Source: Cycas panzhihuaensis
Lineage: Eukaryota > Plantae > Cycadophyta
DNA: 64,000 bases
Direction: 5' to 3'
Assembly: GCA_023213395.1 (NCBI GenBank)
Contig: CM041465.1
Span: 193,695,741 to 193,759,740 of the forward strand
Below the pieces are notes generated by a model. The model ran no database searches. It was not told the DNA's origin and saw nothing but the letters and a program-made list of their open reading frames with translations. The position numbers and the translations under genes are program-made. Shown in pieces: positions 14,701 to 44,685 of the stretch (position 1 is its first letter; each line of letters opens with the position of its first letter).

Positions 14701-17700
14701 ACCCAACTACCATATCCATCCTTTTTATTAATGCCAGACTTCTATAACTTAGGTGGCCAAATCTCTAGTGCCATGTGTCACTATCAAGCTTTATTAATAT
14801 TTTCAAAGTATAATTATCAGAAGGAGTAAGGACTAGTTTGAGGAGTCTATCCTTAGTTATTTTCCCTTTGGCTACAACCATCTTATTTCTTCTTTTGTCT
14901 TTAATAGTACATTCTCCATTATCAAATATTACCTTGTAATCCTGAGCCATCATCTATCATACAGATAAAAGGTTTTTCTTAAGGGTTGATACATAAAGTA
15001 CATCATCAAGGTATTTAGAGTTTCCTAATTATGTTTACCTAATTATGTTTATAACACTATGTTGCCTCTTTCAATAGACTCATGGGAGGTATCATCACTA
15101 AAGATAATTGATCCTTTTTTGGTTCTATCTAAAGTACTAAATGGATGCTCTTTATATGTTATGTGAGTGGAGCAATCTGAATTAATGTACTAATTATCAT
15201 CTTCATCTTCATGGGCAATGAAACTAGATAGAAAAAGATGATTATTTTTCCTTGCTTCCACAACAGTATTAACACTTCCTTTATTTGGTAGATCATATTT
15301 ACCAAAGTATTTATCTTCTCTATGGCTAACATGATTATAAAAAGTACAACAAGATGAATCTCTTCTACCAAAACCTAGGCTCTTGCTATGAGGATAGGAC
15401 TTATCAACATGAGATGGTCTCCCTATTTCCATGAGTGGAGCTTGAATCTCCCTTTGTCTATTATTTGTATAAGTAGGATTAGTCATTTGAGGTGGCATGT
15501 CCCCTTGACAATTTGGACAACAATAGCTTGTCCCATGATTTCTTTCTTTCCTTTGGTACCTATCATAACTAATATTCCTTAGTTTAGCTCCTTGTCTCCT
15601 TTGGTATCAAGTTTGATATTTAGGTTGCATTTCTTGATGAACATCTTATCTAGGGTTCTTGTTCCTTCCTTTTGGGGATTAATCCAGTACCAGCTTAAGA
15701 ATTAGATTGTATTCTTGCTTTAGTAGAAAAAACATATTTAAGAGATTCATTGGTATTTTGTTGTTTCTCTACTACTATTAAGAGATATCTTAGTTGATCT
15801 ATTTTTAATACACTTAAGTCTTTTGATATACTAATTCTAGTAGTAACCATTTCAAATCTCTTAACAACACTAACTCATCTCATGATTTATTCAACTACTC
15901 TTTGTTTAGTCAAAGTATCCCCAAGTGATCTCATCTAATTTACTATGTCTTCCACCTTTGTCATAAGATTGGTTACAGATTCATTTGGCATCATGCTATG
16001 ATTTTCAAACTTGCTTCTTAGGGTCTATAATTTTGATGAAGCAACCCCTTCATAGATTAACTGTAAAGTGTCACAAGCCTCTTTGGAAGTCACTGATTCA
16101 TTAACTCTTGGAAATATGTGGTCTTCAAGTGCACATAATATCAATATAAGTGCTTCACTGTCTTTCTTGACATTTACTTTATAGGTTAACTTCTCAAGAT
16201 CTATTGGGTTTTGACCTAATTCATTATACCCTATTCTCACAATATCCCATATTTCATGAGCTATGTGGATGGGTCTCATCCTCCTACTCTATTTTAGAAA
16301 ATTAAAACAATTAAATTTAGAGATAATCATATTATCAAAGTTAGATGCTATTATGTTTCAACTAGGTTTTGTTAAGTCCTTTAATAAAAATACCCCTAAA
16401 GATATAATTTCTAAACAAGGTTTGAAAAAATTAACCCAAAAATAAAGTTTTAAAGTTTTCCAAGCGTTAATGAGTGTCTTAGTCCCTATAAAGGCTTCTA
16501 GTCTCTAAGTCTAAGTGTCCCCAAGAGAAGCCTTCAATTGTTATACTGTCTAGTGGTGCATGCCTATAAGTGGAAAACTAGAGAGCTAATATATTAGTAC
16601 ATGAGATCTAAGCTTGATATACCTTTGTCAATAAGCTACTAAGAAGGTGTTAATATCCCCCTAATTTGTGTGCCTATTTTTATCAGTCTTATACTTAATA
16701 ATAGATCTAGGATTGATGGATTTGCTAACCAAGGCACTCACCCTCTCTACGTCTAGCCTTAGTCTCCAAACTCCAAAAATAGATAGGTTCTACACCTCAT
16801 ATTGCCACCTAATATGCTTGATAGCCAATGATATTCCTCATCTAATATGAGTAGGCTAAAGGTGTATGCATGGTGGTAACTTCAGGGGTCCTTACTATTC
16901 CCCTTACAAGGCTAGAAAAATAGGTGGTTAATTCAAGTGATTATCTTATTTAACATGAGAATAATAAATATTATGTATGGTCTTGCTTAAATAATAAAAG
17001 ATTCCTTTTGATATCAAGAAATAAATGAACTTAAGATAAGCAAGGCTAAACTTAATTTCAAATAAAAAGATAATCAATGCTTTAGAATTAACTCATTATT
17101 GAGAAATAAAATCAAAGATTAAACTATTTCTTTTCAATGGATGCAAATACGTAACTATTCTCTTTCAATTTTAAAAAATTCTCCTTGAACAATAGAATAA
17201 TTTGCTTGGAAAGAAGGAAATCTAAAAAATATATGTATGTTCTATCAATTAAATACACTAATGCAAAGATATCTTAACAAAGAAATATGAGCAAGATTTT
17301 CTTATGCAAGCTTTATCTTTCAAATGAAGAAACCCCTTGAAAGGTAACTTAAAATAGCTTTCAATGATAATGTATTCACTTTCAATGAGATTAACTTAAT
17401 GAGTTAATAACAATCTATAAGCAAATGAATTCAAGGAGATGATCTTTGTAAATGCTCAAATTCTCTTTTAATCAAGGAGATGCACCTTTAAAATGCTCAA
17501 ATACTCTTTTAAACAAGGAGATGAACCTTTCAATCTTCAAATACTTTTCAATCAAGATAGTTAATCAATATTTAAAACTAATAAGATTCTAAAATGAAGA
17601 TAAAACTTATAATCCTTCTCTAAAATGATGAATATAAATGGCTTATAATCTTTTGATCAAGGATATATATAAAAGGTCTTATAATGAAAGATGATGTATA

Positions 17701-20116
17701 TAAAGGTATAATGATATCCTTGAGTAAAAGGAGCCTTAAAGCTTGAAAGAATAAAAAACTATATGAATAATTTATGCAATGATACACTTATATGATTTCA
17801 AGAGATATGAGAGGCCTTAAGGCAAATAAAAATTCCTTTAAATTATGAAATAATGAGCTCAAGATGCATAAAATCAATTGCAAATATATCTAGATGCAAT
17901 GTGAGATGAAATAAAAGAGATTTCTTTTGTGGATTCTTTTGTAAACAAGGTGTACTTATTGAAGTAAATAAAAAGATAAATGGCCTTAAATAGACATAAA
18001 TAAAACTCCTTAAACAAGAAAAAAAGTCACTCAGATTCACTTTTAGATGTAATGAAAAGAAAATAATAAGATAATATGTACCCATTTATAGCTTTTGAAT
18101 GTAATAGGGATCCTACTACTCCAAAAGCTAAAGAGATGCTAAAAGGCTACAAAATAATTTGTAAATCTTATAAACATTAGCAAATATCATTAATAATTAG
18201 TTAGTATATAAATATCAATCAAGTATATTTAGTTAGAAAGAAAGTTTGGCTCAAAATATCTCCAAAAGTATCCAGCTAGAACTAAAATAAAGCCTTAAAT
18301 TTATGGATGTAAATGGCTTATACAATGATGTCAAAATAAGATGAAGCCTATTTTATTATGAAGAACTCTAAAAAACCTTTCTAAAGGTTTAGACAACTTG
18401 AGAAATAGAGTTGTAAAACTCAAGTTATTAATGAAGCAGTGAATAGACCTATTTATGATTAATAAAATATGAGTAATAAATGAAGGTCAACTTTGGCCTA
18501 ATCAAACTCTATAAAAAATGGCTGAAATCAATAAAATAAGGTCTCCAAGCTATAGATCTCTAAGTTAAGAGTCTAATGAATTTAACAATTTAAAATTTTG
18601 ACTCAACAATGTTGAGATATAACTGAAAACATAAATAGTCCTCTTTACATAAACATCAAAAAATAAAAAATAAATATATTAAGGTTTAGCCCTTTTTGAA
18701 ATAGGTTACTAGTCATATAAGGAGCCATGTGACTAGTGGCTATAACCCTAAGGTGGCCCTAGATCTTAAAAGTTATCAAATAAGTAATATAGTTTTTGAA
18801 AATATAAAAATATTCTAATTTAATTTATAAAGGATTGAAGTCCATAACTGTTTGGATCATATCTAGACCAAATGGGACCAGGGGCTGAGGATGAAGGGGG
18901 CTAATGCCCAAAACCCATGCAAAATTGAAATAGTAATCAAATTTAATTAAAATAAGGTAAAACTTTGTAAAATTTTTTTTTTTTTCAATGAAAATAACTG
19001 GTCATTGATTCAATGGACATACAAATAGTTTTCCATACTAAAATCAATTGAAAGAGTCATGAAAGCTAGTCATGAATGATTAGACAGTAATAACTGATGG
19101 TTTACAATGAAGATCAGTGAAAAAACATTCAAAAAATATGTATTTTAATTATAAAAACTATGTAAAAACTTATAGATGAGATCGCATGGTGAACGATAGA
19201 GTAATGGGCAAGTTTTTTCATAGAAATCAATAAAAAATAGCTTGAAAACTGATCAAGATTAATGTGGAGGGTACATAGAACATAGATCTATCAAATACAC
19301 ATAAAACAAATGATTTTAAGTATATAAAACACTTAAAAAGAATGGCCACAAAGTCGTATAGCAAAGGGAGGATGCAGAGGGCATTTTTGGCACAAAAAAA
19401 TGGTGAAAATGATCTTAAACCTAATAAAAAATATAGTGAGGAGGGGTACTATCAATCTTAGATAGAGATTGATGAGAAAATTCTAAAAAAAAAAAGGTTT
19501 TTTTAATATATATATATATATATATATAGTTGAAAAATGACATAAATGAAGGGTGCACAGATAGTGGTCACTTTAGGAGCTTTTTCTTCTCACTGGGGTC
19601 ACAAAACATGACAAAATTTGAGGGGTAGCTTCCTCTTGTTGATGCTAAGTTGCACATGAAATATCACTGTGAACAGATATCTATAAGCTGAGAATAAGCC
19701 TACCAAATATCAAGAGACCATAGAGGGTGTTGGGGTCGTATGATTGAAATTGGGCTAAAAAACTATTATGAATAGATTCTACAAGTTTAAAAGCACCTTG
19801 ATACCAAGTTTTGGAGAAAACCAATGAGAAACAAAGCCAAATAAGAGTTAATATCATTTTTGAAGGGTTAGCAGTGTTGAAAAACACTAGGGAGGTATCT
19901 CCATAGTATAAATAGTTTTGGGGAGGTAGTAAATGCCTCTATCTAACAATTCAAATAATTAATAAAAAATTAAATAAAATAAACATAATACTTACCTTTG
20001 TATACTTACAAACGATTACATGTTGACTCTCATGGGATTTAGGTAGTTTGAGGTGGCTTTTGGGGGCCTTAGGTGAATTGCCATACATGTTGAGGATGGT
20101 GGCCATTATTGCAATA
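11796..20116 (-). mobile_element. Ty1/copia E, full-length but degenerate
   Basis: LTRs ~11796-12097 and ~19809-20116 share the core tgtt(a/g)aaaaacactagggag...gatggtggc. PBS remnant (cttgatacca) ~19797-19806; PPT (ttctcccc) ~12098-12107. gag ~16350-15600, protease ~15190, integrase (YFITFIDDFTRKTWVY) ~14770-13950, RT ~13600-12700, RNase H (GYTNSDWVGDIDDRKST) ~12580-12130. Confidence 0.93.
19506..19528. repeat. (AT)n microsatellite
   Basis: Read directly from the sequence. Confidence 0.9.
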
Positions 20117-35789: not shown

Positions 35790-36485
35790 ATCATGTTCAT
35801 CTTCTATTTTTCCTTGAACTTGTAGTATAGATGCTTTAGGAATACTTTGAAGAAGCAATTGTGCTTATGTCTTATAATTTCATTATCAACTTTGAAGTGG
35901 TCTTCAATTTATACCATTATCATTACCATATAGTCTTCAATAAATTATGGTCCAAATGTAGCTATGAGTTGCTTTAAATGAATATGAGTGCCTTCATTTT
36001 TTTAGTTTATCCTTTTGATGAGGATTAACCTAGTTAGATGTACATAAAGCTTCATCGAATGCATTATTATGTTCATCAATCTTATTCAAATATTTAACAT
36101 TGTATGCCACATTAGATTTTTCATCAAGAAATACTTATTCTATCATCTATCTAACACAAAATACATCATTAATATAGTTAAATTTACTTAAATCAAAAGA
36201 TTCTTCCCCATAAAGTAAATCAAGGGTATCCTAAATAGATTTAGATGCGTCAATATCATAAACATGATTAAGTATATTATCATCTATGGTACAAAGCATA
36301 AGTACTAGGGCTTCATTGTTCTTTATTAAGTTTTCTCTAAAGTCTAATTCATTTATTATGTAACCATGTTCTATGAATTTCTAAAGGTCATTTACAATAA
36401 AGTATGTTTTCAATATATATTTCCAAATCTCAAAATTTGTCCCATCAAATATGGAAAATCTAGTGTTAATATTAGTGATAGCCAT
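35790..36485 (-). pseudogene. Truncated copia-type gag ORF of element H
   Basis: MAITNINTRFSIFDGTNFEIWKYILKTYF..L*KFIEHGY..NNEALVLML..SKSI*DTLDLLY, followed by an unrelated D/E/K-rich tail. Confidence 0.8.
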
Positions 36486-37580
36486 TATAATCAATGAATC
36501 ATAACATATAATGAATTAAGAAGTATAACTCTTTAATCAATGCAAAATAGATGTTTTCTTTTGAGATGAGATAAACCTTTCAAAGGATATATATGAATCT
36601 TAAAATTTAGAAGAAATGTAATATAATGTAACATGTTTGAGATTTCAAATATTATAGATATGGTCTTGATTTAATTTGAATATGCCTTTCATATGAGAGT
36701 TAAAGAACTTAATATATATAAAGAATTTTTAAATGACTGCTTTTATAAATCAGAAATAACTTGATACTAAAGGAAAGTATATCCTTTTAATGAATGCTAT
36801 TTGTAGATTAATTCTCATAAGCCTTCAAAAGTAAGTTTAAAAGAAACAAATAATATACTTATACAATGAAGTGCAACTTGGAATACTTTTCAAACTTGAA
36901 ATTGAGCAAAATGATCTTCCAATTTTAATTTCTTATCAAAGATAAGCAGCCATCAGATGAGTCATATTAGATTAAATAATGTAAACTTTATGTTTTATTA
37001 TGTTTCTTAAGGTTATTATTTAGTCACGTCTTAAAAGTTGTTTAAGTGATTGTAATGTTGTAAACTTATGTTAAATATTAATTGATTTATGGATGATCGT
37101 TGAAATGTAGAACTACATTCCAACGAACCTCCATCCTATTTATTAATCTCCTAGATTCATGGAATTGGTTCCAGGAATCTAGGAGGTCTGTCCATATGCC
37201 TGACCAAAGGCTATTTTAGGGGGTTTGTGGTTTTGTATATTGGTTTTCATTCATTTATTAATAAAAACTTAGATTAGGAGATGGTTTTTCTTCCTTAGAA
37301 GGGGTTTTCCACCTGTCAACCCTGTGTACATGTGCATTGTCTCTTTCTTATGTTTCTCTTTTATTCCTATGATATTTTGACTGTGTACATGTGCCTATTC
37401 TATCATGGTATCAGAGCAAATAGAATCCCTTTCCACTTTACTAAAACCTTTGTCAAATTGAATCCATCCTTTTGAAAATCATATACTGGCATAACAGTAC
37501 CCCAAACCCCTTCCTACTCCCTGGAAGAATAATCGTACCACACTCTGATTACACCAAATCTGGTCCTGAGAGCAGTAGAG

Positions 37581-38212
37581 AAGTTCACAACATCAGTGTT
37601 TATCATTTATGAGTAGATTCACCCAAAGGATGCATTCAAACAGCAAATGATAAAAACTTGGAGGGTCGGGGATGTCCTCTTCTTGGTCTAAATACCACAC
37701 CACCATTTTTTCATCAGAAGGCTAGTGAGGAGATCACCAATTATAAACTGTGGTTATTATGCATGATGGGCTGCATTACGGAAGTTACTGTTTCAGTTTC
37801 TTGAAGCTAGAATGCAAACTGCCAGGGATACTCCTTTGCAAAAATAAGTACTTTCCCTTGGAGCTGGCTTTGACACAACATTCTTCCAACTTCAGGAAGA
37901 AGAGAAGGCCCCAACACTCTACGTGGAGCTAGATTTCAAGGAGGTGACTGGTAAAAGGGTAGCACTAATTGAGTTCCATGAAGAGCTGAGGAACAACATT
38001 GGCAAGATAGCACTCTACGTGGAGCTAGATTTCAAGGAGGTGACTGGTGAAAAGGTAGCATTGATTAAGTTCCATAAAGAGCTAAGGAACAAGATTGGCA
38101 AGACAACACTCATTTCACAAGAAAGAGGTTACTAACCTTTATCATTGTAGAATGTGTTCTTATATATTTGGAGCTAGATATAAGCTATATGGTAGTTAAA
38201 TGGGCTTTGAAG
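37581..38212 (+). pseudogene. LCMT1: Captured, intronless, rearranged fragment of leucine carboxyl methyltransferase 1 (PP2A methyltransferase; plant SBI1)
   Basis: 37704-38128 translates HFFIRRLVRRSPIINCGYYA*WAALRKLLFQFL..K*VLSLGAGFDTTFFQLQEEEKAPTLYVELDFKEVT.. 38129-38212 translates LLTFIIVECVLIYLELDISYMVVKWALK. 37581-37703 translates KFTTSVFIIYE*IHPKDAFKQQMIK/LEGRGCPLLGLNTTP. All are characteristic LCMT1 motifs. Confidence 0.93.
37915..38111 (+). repeat. 96-bp in-frame tandem duplication within the LCMT1 fragment
   Basis: CACTCTACGTGGAGCTAGATTTCAAGGAGGTGACTGGT occurs at 37915 and 38011. Confidence 0.95.
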
Positions 38213-38244
38213 ATGGCCCTGAGCATTGGATCAGAATAGAACTG

Positions 38245-38330
38245 TAGTCGCTCCATGCCATTGAAGACCCACAGTCGCTCCATGCCATTGAAGACCAGTA
38301 GTCACTACTCCAACGCCATCGCAGACCTAT
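38245..38330. repeat. ~27-bp tandem repeat (AGTCGCTCCATGCCATTGAAGACC), 2 copies plus a degenerate third
   Basis: Read directly; lies just right of the LCMT1 insert. Confidence 0.8.
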
Positions 38331-38479
38331 AGAAATCCTCGCCGCTGCCATGGAGAGAATGGAAAAATAAGGTAGGGTTTCATTGCCTTTACCCCCCCAG
38401 ACCCCAATTCCAATTAAATTTTAATTTTGTGATATAAATTAAAACAAACCCATCAGGTCTGCATTCTTAGGTTTTGTTT

Positions 38480-39740
38480 TATTTATTTTTTAATTTTTTA
38501 TTTAAATCAAAATTTCAATCCCCCCTTTATCACATTAATAAATCAATGTAAAACCTCCTTATTACATTAATAAATTAACTTAAAACTATTTTTTTAATAA
38601 ACCTTCAATTTATAAATAAAATTTAAAATCTTTCCCCTTTAATTAATTTTTAGTACGTAAAATCAAACCCCCCTTTATAATACTTTTGTCACATTTTGAT
38701 TTAATGAAACATTAACCCCACTTCATTATTATACTTTGATTTAAATCAAAGCCCCCCCCATTATACTTTACACTTTGATTTAAATCAAAGTCCCCCCCTT
38801 AAACACATTTTTATTAAAACAAATTCCTCCTCCCTTTTATAATACCTTTATTAAAATAAATTTATAAACCCCCCCTCAATAACACCCCCTCTTTTATCAC
38901 TTTGTTATTTAATCAAATCAAATCCCCCGTTAATTACATAATCTCCCTTACATTTTATTCTTAACTTTTTTTTTTTAAATTAACCCTTCTCCTCTACAAC
39001 ACTTTAATGATAAAACATTACCCCTCCCCCCCTTTGTTTTGTTTTAGTATTCTTTAATAAAACATAAGCTCAACCCCACTCTCTTTCTTCTTATTATGTT
39101 TATTTTTTGATTAAATTTTGTATTGTATACTTGATTGAAATCAAATACAATCTTTTTTTTGCCTTGATTCTAAGTAAATATATACCCTTCTATTACTCTT
39201 TAATGATTAAAATTAAGCCTTTGATTACTACATTTTAATGTTAAAAATTATTTCAAATTAATATAGTTAATTTTAAGAAAATTAAAATTAACCTTTTACT
39301 TATTATATTTAATCAAATCCATTCCTTTTATTATACTTTTTTTTCATATTTATTTTTCTCTAACACTTCATTATTAATTTATGAATTAACTTTTTCTTTC
39401 CTTTCACACTTAATCGATAGAGTTGAATTATGCCATTTAAGCCTTAAAATTACACATCTATTTCTTAAAATAAAAAGGGAAATAAAATACTTAATCATAA
39501 AGTTTTTTCTGTTAAGGGAAACTAAATACCTAGTTACAATTTTTTTTTTAAGTAAAGCATTTACTTTGTTAAGGAGAATTGTTTATTTTTTCCAAAAGGG
39601 ATTTGTTATTTTCAAAAAGGGGATTGTTTATTAAACAAGGATTTTTTTTATTCAAAGTAAAGGGGGACTATTTTTTCTAAGGGGGATTATTTTTCTAAAG
39701 AGAATTGTTTTTCAAAAATGATTGCTTAAGGAATTATTTT
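38480..39740. repeat. Low-complexity leader array with repeated C-tracts, then G-tracts
   Basis: Recurring (T)AAATCAAA..CCCCC(C)TTT units at ~38500-39080 and AAAGGGGGA(T/C)T units at ~39590-39700. Confidence 0.6.
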
Positions 39741-42700
39741 TAAGAAGTTTGTTTATTTCTATTTAAAAACATATGATTCTTTTTATTTTAAAATCAATTA
39801 ATGCATACTAAGATGATTTTGTGAATTAGATCTATTAACAAGATTAGTACTTTCACTAGGTAATTATTTTTTCAGTCACCTTCATAACTTTTTAATCTAC
39901 AAATAAACCTCAACACTCCCAATATGGCATTAATACCAGGGATAGTCACCTGCATTCCAATTCTAGTATTAACCAGCTTAAACTATGCCAACTAGAGGAA
40001 TCACATATCCCATCAGCTCAAACAGCAAAACGTATGGCAATATATGATAAGTGAATTCCAAAAACCAAAAGTAGATGCTACTGAGAGACTTATGGTATAT
40101 CTGATGAACTCAGATGCTGCATTAGACACCATATTAAACTCACTCTCACCAAAAATCAGTCGACAATTTTCTGAAAAAGATGACTTAGCCACTGTCTGGA
40201 AAAACCTTGGAAGAAAAATATGACAATGTTGATACACATCAAATAGCTATCCTAGAAGAGCAATTGTATAATCTGACTTTTGATGACTTTATAAATGTTG
40301 AGGATTTTTGAACTAAAATCCAATCAATTAATAAAGATCTAGATAACTACATTAAATCTAAAACCAAAGAAGGTGATATAGAAAAAATAACTACGCATGT
40401 TAAAGATGATGACACCCTCATATGTCTTGTAGTTAACAAATTACCAAAACACTTTAATCTTTACCAAGCTACCAGACAACAAGCTGGCAATCCACCTATC
40501 ACATTCAATCAATTGATAAACCAGCTGATTGAACATCAGACAATATTAATTAGAATAGGTGCAATAAAAGATCATTTACAGGCTTTGTTTTCTAAAATGT
40601 ACTTCTTAAAACATGAAGTAAGTAACTTGCTTGAAAGAAAGAAAGTTAAAAGATATATGTATGCTTTTTTAAATGAATACTTTAATGCAAAATAACTTAA
40701 CCAAGAAATAAGATCAAGATTTTGTTATGCAAACTTTATCTTTCAAATGAGGAAGCTCCTTATAAAAATAACTTTAAACAACTTTCAATGACTATATGCA
40801 CCTTCAATGAGGTTATTTCAATGAATAAATAACAAGATATAGGTAAATGAATTAAGGAGATGATCTTTTCAAATACTCAAATACTCTTTCAATCGAGGAG
40901 ATGAACCCTTCAATCTTCTTTCAACAAGATGGCTAATTGATGCTTAAAGCCAATAAGATTTAAAATAAAGGCCAATGTATAGCTTATAATCTTTTCTAAA
41001 ATGATGAATAAAATGGATTATAATACTTTTATCAAGGATGCATATGAGAGGCCTTATAATAAAAGATGATCTATATAAGGATGAAATGATATCCTTCAAT
41101 AAAAGAAGCTTTAAAGCTTGTAAGAATCGAAGAATAATAACTAACAACTTATGAAATATAATGTACTTATATGATTTTAAGAAATATGAAGGCCTTAAAG
41201 CAAATAAAAAATTCTTTAAATTATGAAATAATGAGCTCAAATTACATAATATTACTTGAAAATGTTTTTAGATGTAATATATATAAAAGGAAAGTGAGCT
41301 CTTTAGTTGGATTCTTTTATAAATAAGATGCATCTTTAAAGCATTCAAGAAGAAAAATAGCCTTAAATAGGCATAAATACTCAAAGAAAATTCCTTAAAC
41401 AAGTAAAAAAGTCACTTAGATTTACATTTATATGTAATAGAAAGAAATTAATAAGGTAAGAGGTACCCAATTATAACTTTTGAATGCAACAGGACTCCTA
41501 CTACTCTAGAAGCCAAAAGAGATGCTAAAAGGCTATAAAATAGCTTTTAGATCTTTTAAACACTAGTAAATATCATTAATAATTAGTTAGGATAAAAATA
41601 TCAATTAAATATATTTAGTTGGAAAGAAATTTTGGCTTAAAATATATTTAAAAGTGTCTAACTAGGATTGAAATAAAGGCTTCAATTTAAGGATATTAAT
41701 GACCTATAAAATGATGTTAGAATAAGATGAAACCTATTATGTTATAAAGAGCTCTAAAAATTATTTCCAGCAGTTTAGACATCTTGAGAAATGAAGCTGT
41801 AGAACTTAAGTTATTGACAAAATAGTGAAAAGACCTATTTATGGCTAATGAAATATGAGCAATAAATGAATGTCAAATTTAAAATAATCAAACTCTATAA
41901 ATAATGGTTCAAATCAAGAAAATAAGGACTCCAAGCTATAGAGATTTGAATAAACTTTCTAAAATTTTAAACAATTTATAAATTAGATAAATGGTTACTG
42001 AGATATCACAGAAATAGCGCAAGTATCTTTTTTTTAGGCTTGTGTGACATATGAAAAAATGGCAAACTAAGGTAGGAGTGCAAAACCCTAATGGGAGATC
42101 AAATGGACTTAGAATAAGATGAAGTTTTAGAGAAAGGGTTATAACGATGAGAGGTACCTAGTAGATATAAAAATTTTGAAAAATAATCTTATATTAAGGA
42201 GAATGAAGATGTGGAAGCCTAGGGGATTGCAGGAGCTCAACTAAGAAAAATAAAGCCTAAAACCACCTCAAATCTCTTCTAACAAGAATTAAGAATAGGT
42301 TTAGGACTTCCAAAATGACATATAAAGCTCTAACAAGAAGAAATAATTAATATTAGGGTTGTAGTGAATGAAAAATATGATTTTTCATTCGTTTTCTTCA
42401 GAAAACTTAGATCTAAACCTTAGATGAGTGCAAATAAGTGAATAAGCTACTACAAGTGGCTGTAAATGACTAGAAATATTGGGATAAATATGCACACTAT
42501 AGCTATAAAAATCTAAAGAAAACCATGATTAAATGGATTGTATGTATCAAAAGTAGTAAAAAAATAGCTAAATATTAACAAAAAACTATATAAAAATGTT
42601 AGTAAATTTTATAAAATTGATAAAATATTAATGTAAATGCTTGTCATGAAGTGAAATTAATGCTCTAATATAGGTGGTCAAGATCTGGACTCTAATACCA

Positions 42701-42897
42701 TGTTAGAATTGCTCAAAGTGCTCTAATATAGGTGGCCAAAATCTACGCTCTAATACCATGTTAGAATTTCATCACAACTTTGATACAATGTTAGAATTTA
42801 TAAAAGTAGTAGGTACAATCATGTAAATCAAGACATATTCAAAGTACACTTGTGAAATAGCATTATATTAACTCATTGTGAAGAGAGTACATAAGAA

Positions 42898-43453
42898 CTT
42901 TTTGGCATTATATGGGTATGAACTACCATCTCTTAGGAACTATGCCATAGAAATTTCTAGAGTTCAAGTAGTGGATGACTATTTACAACAAACCATAGAG
43001 ATACTTAAGATATTAATGGAAAACCTGAACTTAGCTTGTAACTAAGTAAAACAATAAGCATATAAATGAAGAAACGAATGGGAGTTCCAACTAGGAGATT
43101 GGGTTTATTTATGTTTGCAACCATGCAAGCAAACTTCATTTAAAAGAAATGGTAAACATAAGTTAGATCCAAAGTTTTGTGGGCCCTATAAGGTCCTTAA
43201 ATAAGTGGGAGAAGTGGATTATACCTTAGAGTTTCCTATAACATCTAAAATCCTTAATGTTTTCTATGTATCTAGTCTTAAAGGGATAATTGGATAACAT
43301 TTGTAAGTACAAACAAAATTACTAATACTCGATAATGAAGGGAGGCTCCAACTAATACTTAAATTAATTTTGGAGGAAAGGGTTAGGCACTTGTACTCTT
43401 AATACATTAAAGTGTATCTCATCAAATGGAAGAAATTAACATAAGATAATTCA
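42898..43453 (+). mobile_element. Chromovirus integrase C-terminus and partial chromodomain (family of A)
   Basis: ALYGYE..; WVYLCLQPCKQ; KLDPKFCGPYKVL; VYLIKWKKL. Homologous to 4750-5310. Confidence 0.88.
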
Positions 43454-44685
43454 TGTTATATAACATTCTAAGGTTAGCAGCACAAGAACATCCTATCACA
43501 TGGAGAAGGTTAAGGCTAAACCATAACCACATGACTAAGGAAGAGAAGGTTAAGAATAATTATTAATTTATGTGCACTAGCCACATAACTCTACTAATAG
43601 GATCACAGGGCCTGTGGGGCTACTAATAAGATGTTAGGATTAGTAGTCATTTTTGCCTATATAAAGCCAAATAATTATTTAAAAAAAAAAACACTTATGC
43701 TATTTTTGAGATTATGCAAGAGTATATTTCCTTTCGGTGATCATTAAGTTTCCTAACTTTCCATTGATGTATTTGTGTTTTAAAAATTATAATAAAAGAT
43801 CTTTTGAGATCTTAAATATTTTCCAAGGTGTTTTTTAGTACAACTTAAGGATTTAGAATGCTCCAAGTGGTATCAGAGCCATGTTTATAATCATGAGGAG
43901 CTATTCAAAAGCCAAAAAAAACAAGATTCTTTTTTTTTTTCCTTACCAAATCAAGTACTCTCTTTATCCAAGTAGAGATTGAGGAAAGGCCTTCTCTTAG
44001 TACTCTCTCCTTATAGAGATTAAGGAATATAACCTACACCATTCAAGAGTCATAGAAGAAGGGAAATTCTTTTCCCATAGGTAATGTCTAGCACTTCCTT
44101 TTGCCTTCTTTGTGTTTACTTGAGTTCAATTATTTTATTTCAATTTTTGTATTGCAGGCATTAATCCAAGGGTAGATAACTCTATTTTGTACCTAACTTT
44201 CTCCCTCGTATCCTTTATTTCTAGGTAGATAACTCTTTATGCTAGCTACCCAAAGTAGTTAGGTAAAGACCTTGCACCGAGGATCAATAAACATCATATG
44301 GATCTATCATTTTGGCTAAGCATACCATGGCTTTTTTGGCTCTTATAAGAAATACTAGAGACAACATTCTTGAACCAAGCACTAGATAGAACCTAACTAT
44401 AGAACTACAACTCTATGTACCCTTGGGTATATAGGAGAACACCCTATAGGCCTCTTTTCTCCATCCTAGCATAGGTAATCTTGCAATCATTTATCCTCTA
44501 TAGTGCATAGGTTAGTAGTTAGTGCTCGGAAGTTATTCTGGTTGAATACCTTTATATGATTGTAGACCTTATAAAGATAGTTATTCCTTTGTAGGTAATA
44601 CCCTGAGATATTGGGTTAAGCTACAATATTAATAGAGAAGTTTATTACAAAGCCTATATAATCAAACATGTCTCTATTAAGTGTC
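43454..44685 (+). mobile_element. 5' LTR, PBS and leader of a chromovirus related to A
   Basis: LTR 43454 (TGTTATA) to 43865 (..CTCCA); PBS TGGTATCAGAGCC 43868-43880; leader blocks at 44165-44670 are homologous to 50-450. Confidence 0.85.

Follow-up and report, generated by a model that had tools for sequence, protein, structure and literature searches.

The plus strand at 37572-38205 of the window (the whole 64,000-nt stretch of DNA analysed here) carries an intronless LCMT1 pseudogene fragment that appears to lie inside a decayed plant copia-type retrotransposon; the fragment is identified by profile, structure and protein matches. The LCMT1 sequence is present in permuted order, with residues 215-258 (maize LCMT1 numbering) placed first, followed by residues 50-157 and then by residues 190-215, and the two outer ends of the insert abut in a linear mRNA. 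Plant LTR retrotransposons are well known to capture gene fragments; the unusual part here is an exact circular permutation that is common to relatives.

Homology searches were consistent in assigning the insert to LCMT1. The stop-free piece at 37848-38135 matched the Pfam family LCM (PF04072) with 26.8 bits at a cut-off of 22.3, and it matched the human LCMT1 structures 3o7w (residues 79-121, E 4.3e-5) and 3iei (residues 95-137), with the structure alignment covering the SAM-binding LGAG.DTT motif. An exhaustive phmmer search returned 81 proteins at E ≤0.001, in which plant LCMT1 reached a best E of 7.6e-17 and an identity of up to 68%; the matches that were looked up are leucine carboxyl methyltransferase 1 of maize, pigeon pea, Phtheirospermum and Escallonia. 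Maize LCMT1 (P0007, 357 aa, Pfam LCM) was used as the ruler for block positions, and its tblastn search (best E 6.7e-33) placed residues 208-264 at 37551-37720, residues 51-166 at 37707-38084 and residues 190-215 at 38129-38206. The original prediction of LCMT1 sequence in permuted order, downstream block first, is therefore borne out by tblastn with P0007, with Pfam LCM and the human structures supporting the identity. A three-frame translation of 37300-38400 also contains the strings quoted in that prediction. Elsewhere in the window, a weak LCMT1-like tblastn match at 320-406 on the minus strand (RGCALL.., 45% over 29 aa, E 0.017) was considered as a second LCMT1 copy and taken as probably due to chance at that E value.

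The first segment of the insert, block B (37572-37702, plus strand), encodes residues 215-258 and reads AVEKFTTSVFIIYE, a stop codon, and then IHPKDAF..NLEGRGCPLLGLNTTP; it was delimited by tblastn and by contigs 12 and 14 of sequencing run X15, and it contains, besides the one stop codon, a 1-nt frameshift in an A-run near 37652-37656. Block A1 (37703-38125, plus strand; residues ~50-157) follows and reads HFFIRRLVRRSPIIN..LGAGFDTTFFQLQ..YVELDFKEVT..ISQERG, as supported by Pfam, PDB, tblastn and X15 contig 12. The last segment, block A2 (38126-38205, plus strand; residues ~190-215), reads LLTFIIVECVLIYL..VVKWA and was recovered by tblastn and by X15 contig 12 at 38126-38203. LCMT1 residues 1-49 and 259 to the end are absent from the insert, and no A-run was found at either of its ends. 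Over the whole insert the LCMT1 reading frame is broken by several stop codons, the 1-nt frameshift and the loss of residues ~158-189, and the insert is a pseudogene fragment and not a working gene.

Contigs of four public runs were mapped onto 36400-40400 at 80% likeness. Run X15 comes from a related plant and its type on record is only a guess; it comprises 37 million letters of contigs with an LCMT1 depth of ~16, and on the basis of these two values it was taken to be a transcriptome. Its contig 12 (978 nt) carries the LCMT1 sequence in the order of the linear message: letters 382-694 correspond to 37703-38015 (20 differences in 313 letters, 6.4%), letters 806-883 to 38126-38203 and letters 884-978 to 37572-37665. 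At the joint from 38203 to 37572 the alignment goes back 632 in the window, with 2 letters (GC) that fit either side, and the parent mRNA is continuous across ..GTAGTTAAATGG/GCAGTAGAGAAG.., which places the turn point at residue 214/215. As the outer ends of the insert abut in a linear mRNA contig, 37572-38205 represents exactly one turn. This agrees with the one complete turn that had been proposed, the ends meeting with a 2-nt overlap, and the matches are accordingly permuted and not collinear. The limits first given for the insert, 37581-38212, are corrected to 37572-38205; likewise, the idea that the insert ends at WALK stands as far as the abutment is concerned, but its final letters, LK, belong to the next, unrelated fragment. 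X15 contig 14 maps to 37640-37702 and then continues into sequence absent from the window; it is linear mRNA continuing beyond block B. X15 contig 13 (497 nt) maps to 37640-37727 across the inner joint with 1 difference, but its match ends 25 letters past the joint, an overhang too short for bridging; it may have been transcribed from an element-borne copy.

Exon borders were inferred from mis-predicted LCMT1 proteins of other species among the 81 phmmer matches, using breaks in their homology to P0007. Such a break arises at the exon border when a gene model runs on into intron sequence or leaves an exon out. Recurrent breaks were located at residues 36/37 (4 proteins), 65/66 (8 proteins), 94/95, 110/111, ~129, 152/153, 188/189, 239-245 and 273/274, with the borders around the exon of residue 258 (239-245 and 273/274) found in two proteins each. 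At least five of the inferred exon junctions (65/66, 94/95, 110/111, ~129 and 152/153) are crossed by the insert without intervening sequence, and the insert is thus derived from spliced RNA, as had been argued from its uninterrupted frame. The inner joint at 37702/37703 links residue 258 to residue ~50. According to the inferred map, residue 50 lies ~13 codons inside the exon bounded by 36/37 and 65/66, residue 258 lies inside the exon bounded by ~239-245 and 273/274, and none of the three LCMT1 breakpoints (residues 258, ~50 and 214/215) falls on an exon border. With both of its sides exon-internal, the inner joint gives no support to canonical back-splicing as its source. Comparison of the joint with the inferred exon borders thus went against one of the origins originally considered for the insert (circRNA, circularised cDNA or a double template jump): a canonical back-splice between residues 258 and 50 is not supported, whereas a double template jump or a circular cDNA would fit.

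Additional scars were found inside the insert. Positions 37915-38010 are tandemly duplicated at 38011-38106 (96 bp, 88-90% identity), and CACTC is present at both junction partners of the duplication. Divergence is 10-12% between the two duplicate copies and 6.4% between insert and mRNA; on these values, the 96-bp duplication may be as old as the capture itself. At 38125/38126, ~95 nt of mRNA (residues ~158-189) are missing, and X15 contig 12 has 111 letters between 38015 and 38126, ~16 of which correspond to 38110-38125. A clean exon skip was considered as the cause of the ~95-nt loss and rejected, as the right edge fits the inferred border at 188/189 but the left edge lies ~4-5 codons past 152/153.

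The same joints were observed in DNA of related organisms, with 3-7 contigs per site. One contig of run X4 (organism C) covers 37667-37808 at 94% and bridges the inner joint, a contig of run X1 (organism A) covers 37674-37866 at 89% and reaches 29 letters past the inner joint, and an X4 contig at 38089-38242 bridges both the deletion joint and the right end. Joints that are common to relatives point to a single old capture, since inherited or amplified, and not to an assembly error. Relatives also carry deletion variants, in which 37600 is joined to 37745, or 37656 to 37714 or 37716. The retained parts of these variants in organisms A and B had depths of 100-240, compared with ~5 per single contig, suggesting that the deletion derivatives are multi-copy and form an amplified subfamily. 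Organism A additionally holds, in X1 contig 7, a collinear intronless LCMT1 piece equivalent to 37704-38014 with 85% identity to the window, and an X1 contig joins 38198 to 37588, in the order of A-end to B-start and 19 nt shorter at the joint. In this organism LCMT1 was probably retro-copied more than once, leaving a separate processed pseudogene, or else a multi-turn copy was made.

The element that surrounds the insert is recognizable from its 5' side. The 3' part of a 5' LTR was located at 36967-37405 (plus strand), to which X15 contig 9 maps at 36967-37417; its left limit is approximate, possibly near 37041, and it ends in ..CA directly before the primer binding site (PBS). This LTR part had a high depth in three DNA runs (thousands to tens of thousands, as summed contig depth). 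The PBS itself, TGGTATCAGAGC at 37406-37417 (plus strand), is an exact 12-nt match, which we take to be of the initiator-Met tRNA type that is typical of copia; PBS-type 12-mers with at most 1 mismatch occur 5 times in the window, versus 0.18 expected. Downstream, a copia-type gag remnant was detected at 39996-40220 (plus strand; PF14223, Retrotran_gag_2, E 1.2e-5) by a weak match of 25.3 bits, below the cut-off of 27, and this remnant had a depth of tens of thousands. The suggested placement of the insert between PBS and gag is thus probable, with the exact PBS on one side and this sub-threshold match on the other. The stretch from 37472 to ~39100 is low-copy (depth 16-240) and stands between the high-copy LTR and PBS on one side and the high-copy leader and gag on the other; the leader thus contains ~1.6 kb of lineage-specific cargo. 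Tandem repeats are present in the cargo region at 38244-38303 (27 nt, 2.2 copies) and at 38716-38798 (39 nt, 2.1 copies), the latter followed by ~700 bp of AT-rich sequence with C-runs.

No 3' LTR was detected when the window was compared with itself by BLAST (word sizes 11 and 7), and no pol domains were found in stop-free pieces of at least 40 aa at 40.7-41.3 kb, with no such pieces onward to 42.7 kb. The element is presumably truncated or gag-only, and the insert would have had its place in one intact element. The post-gag sequence at 40623-41984 is 77% identical over 1.4 kb to 17198-18597, which belongs to a second element in the window, and the leaders and LTRs of the two are unlike. Farther downstream, a Ty3-type integrase SH3 remnant was found at 43070-43201 (plus strand; PF24626, E 1.8e-7), with further PBS-like 12-mers at 42747-42758 (minus strand) and 43868-43879 (plus strand), indicating that other elements abut or truncate the copia element near 42.7-43.9 kb.

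Fragments of other transcripts flank the LCMT1 sequence within the leader. On the left, 42 nt at 37506-37547 match an unrelated X15 transcript contig. On the right, 38200-38242 is a fragment of another host transcript, with an inferred minus-strand orientation; two X15 records match it from 38200 to 38241 and 38242, respectively, and have the same upstream sequence. The right end of LCMT1 and this fragment have 6 nt, ATGGGC, in common, and the minus-strand frame of the fragment, FYSDPMLRAIFKAH, may resemble a GH5 endo-mannanase motif. Stop-free pieces from either strand of 37406-37600 and 38191-38434 had no Pfam match, and 36500-40500 had no Rfam match. The flanks of the insert also resemble each other: AATCTGGTCCTGAG at 37557-37570 (plus strand) and its partner AAGATGGCCCTGAG at 38210-38223 share 11 of 14 letters (shuffle p ~0.015), a suggestive likeness that may reflect a return of the enzyme to the same donor. 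A target-site duplication was rejected for this pair, as the right copy does not adjoin the insert and the likeness stops at 14 nt.

With about even confidence, we propose that the LCMT1 mRNA fragment entered the copia cDNA by microhomology-guided template switching in the virus-like particle; that this occurred by the route of Bs1 and of LTR-mediated retroposition is likewise an evenly balanced judgement. During minus-strand synthesis, reverse transcriptase (RT) would have entered the LCMT1 mRNA at ..AAATGGGC (38205), coming from a neighbouring captured RNA with ATGGGC, and would have copied block A toward the 5' end of the mRNA, slipping twice on the way to produce the 96-bp duplication at CACTC and the ~95-nt skip. 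At codon ~50, within an exon, RT would then have dissociated from the template and resumed at codon ~258, nearer the 3' end of the same mRNA molecule, to synthesise block B until it reached the start of its own first pass. At this point the template would have been consumed by RNase H, or held in a hybrid with RT's own product, and a change of template would have been forced. Such a self-collision would yield exactly one turn without a circle, and the resulting chimeric element would have been inherited, with its derivatives amplified. Within this scheme, we infer the direction in which synthesis ran, the sequence of steps, the re-use of a single molecule and the role of RNase H.

Switching on a linear mRNA was favoured over a circular template for these reasons: the inner joint is exon-internal, the right end shows microhomology, foreign fragments form a chain around the insert, and further slippage occurred within it. 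The exon-internal inner joint fits a jump by the enzyme and not splicing, and the leader is a chain of pieces in which 37506-37547 and 38200-38242 match other transcripts. Moreover, the shared joints and the depths of the variants in relatives match secondary retroposition with common switch points. Against this account, at least three switches and the re-use of one molecule are needed, whereas a circle needs two switches, and the exon map is indirect, being built from mis-predicted proteins of other species. We also know of no earlier case in which a linear template gave a product of exactly one turn.

The main competitor is a template that was itself a circle, either a non-canonical circular LCMT1 RNA closed within exons or a partial cDNA circularised by end joining, which we consider possible at a distinctly lower level of confidence. 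RT, or a DNA-repair or integration step, would then have entered at ..TGG/GCA.., completed one round and left at its own start, a course of events that we hold equally tentatively. The narrower claim that the copia RT read once round a covalently closed host RNA, or a circularised cDNA, and that the copy became part of the element's own leader appears slightly more doubtful again. Exactly one turn with a 2-nt overlap is what a circle would most simply be expected to give, and two switches would suffice. The insert lacks an A-run at its ends, as do the mouse circRNA-derived pseudogenes, which are likewise found among LTRs (PMC4897178), and X15 contig 13 crosses the inner joint at 37640-37727 with 1 difference, although by no more than 25 letters on the far side. 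However, residues 258 and 50 both lie inside inferred exons, which goes against a canonical back-splice, and that reverse transcription was prone to switching is already evident from the surrounding short fragments, from the microhomology of 6 nt and from slippage inside the insert. Exon-internal circles are rare and are often reverse transcriptase artefacts; the X15 joint contig, diverging after its 25 letters, is more likely a transcript of an element-borne copy.

A collinear A-B capture could instead have been reordered later at the DNA level, through an A-B-A-B duplication with two deletions, unequal recombination or break repair, and this we regard as unlikely. The region did undergo tandem duplication and deletions, relatives show further deletion variants (37600 to 37745; 37656 to 37714 or 37716), and organism A has both the collinear intronless piece (37704-38014, 85%) and the joint of 38198 to 37588. 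Conversely, this history would demand two independent truncations at the same mRNA position within 2 nt, for which we estimated a chance of ~5 in 700, and the collinear X1 piece (85%) is farther from the window than the mRNA is (94%) and so is not a direct precursor; furthermore, the turn point is exactly where the insert and the neighbouring transcript fragment overlap by 6 nt. It is very improbable that the permutation arose from faulty assembly or alignment, or that the likeness to LCMT1 is due to chance: although one assembly supplied the window and decay of the element is advanced, independent DNA contigs of related organisms show the same joints, and significant matches were obtained in Pfam, PDB and plant LCMT1 proteins.

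Serial switching on a linear mRNA, the preferred reading, has parallels in known systems. Tan et al. (2016, PMC5131818) report a median 6-bp microsimilarity at the switch points of LTR-mediated retrocopies, and this study together with the work on maize Bs1 describes microsimilarity-dependent switching, multi-gene chimeras (maize Bs1, Drosophila) and secondary retroposition. The Bs1 literature (Jin & Bennetzen 1994; Elrouby & Bureau 2001, 2010) adds that Bs1 copies share switch points. Compared with these cases, the insert is similar in being a copy of a spliced partial host mRNA inside an LTR element, with pieces of several transcripts in a row and with copies in relatives that have common switch points, which suggests secondary retroposition; the 6-nt microsimilarity at its right end equals the median of 6 bp of Tan et al. 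In contrast to the collinear fragments described in these papers as far as consulted, the halves are swapped here and comprise exactly one turn. Likewise, the cargo here lies in the leader behind the PBS, no part of an ORF was replaced and no hybrid ORF survives.

Pseudogenes derived from circRNA in mouse and human were defined by Dong et al. (2016, PMC4897178) through a back-splice joint, from the end of the last exon to the start of the first, and the same authors point out that non-collinear joints are possible when reverse transcriptase crosses nearby ends of linear RNA. The insert resembles these pseudogenes in being retro-copied host sequence with a non-collinear joint, without a poly(A) tail and in association with LTRs. 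It differs in that its joint is exon-internal on both sides (by the inferred map), its host is a plant and the copy resides in the element's own leader. Complex insertions in Triticeae have been ascribed to retroelement recombination errors (Sabot & Schulman 2007, cited in PMC13317346). The insert is also similar to the products of intramolecular template switching in retroviruses and retrotransposons (deletions, duplications and 'deletion with insertion'), where jumps at short homologies give duplications and deletions, comparable to the 96-bp duplication and the ~95-nt loss seen here. Unlike such errors, a jump beyond the point of entry combined with a forced stop at that point would lead to circular permutation of the cargo. 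To our knowledge, circularly permuted cargo arising from a jump past the entry point and a forced stop has not been described as a class of product, and a literature search of limited scope returned no description of permuted cargo in a plant LTR element.

Overall, the insert is a natural fossil of the behaviour of a retrotransposon RT on co-packaged cellular RNA: either RT returned to a single molecule, where its first pass put an end to the second, or it circled once. It also serves as a warning that a non-collinear genomic joint, the criterion used for circRNA-derived pseudogenes, can arise without back-splicing.
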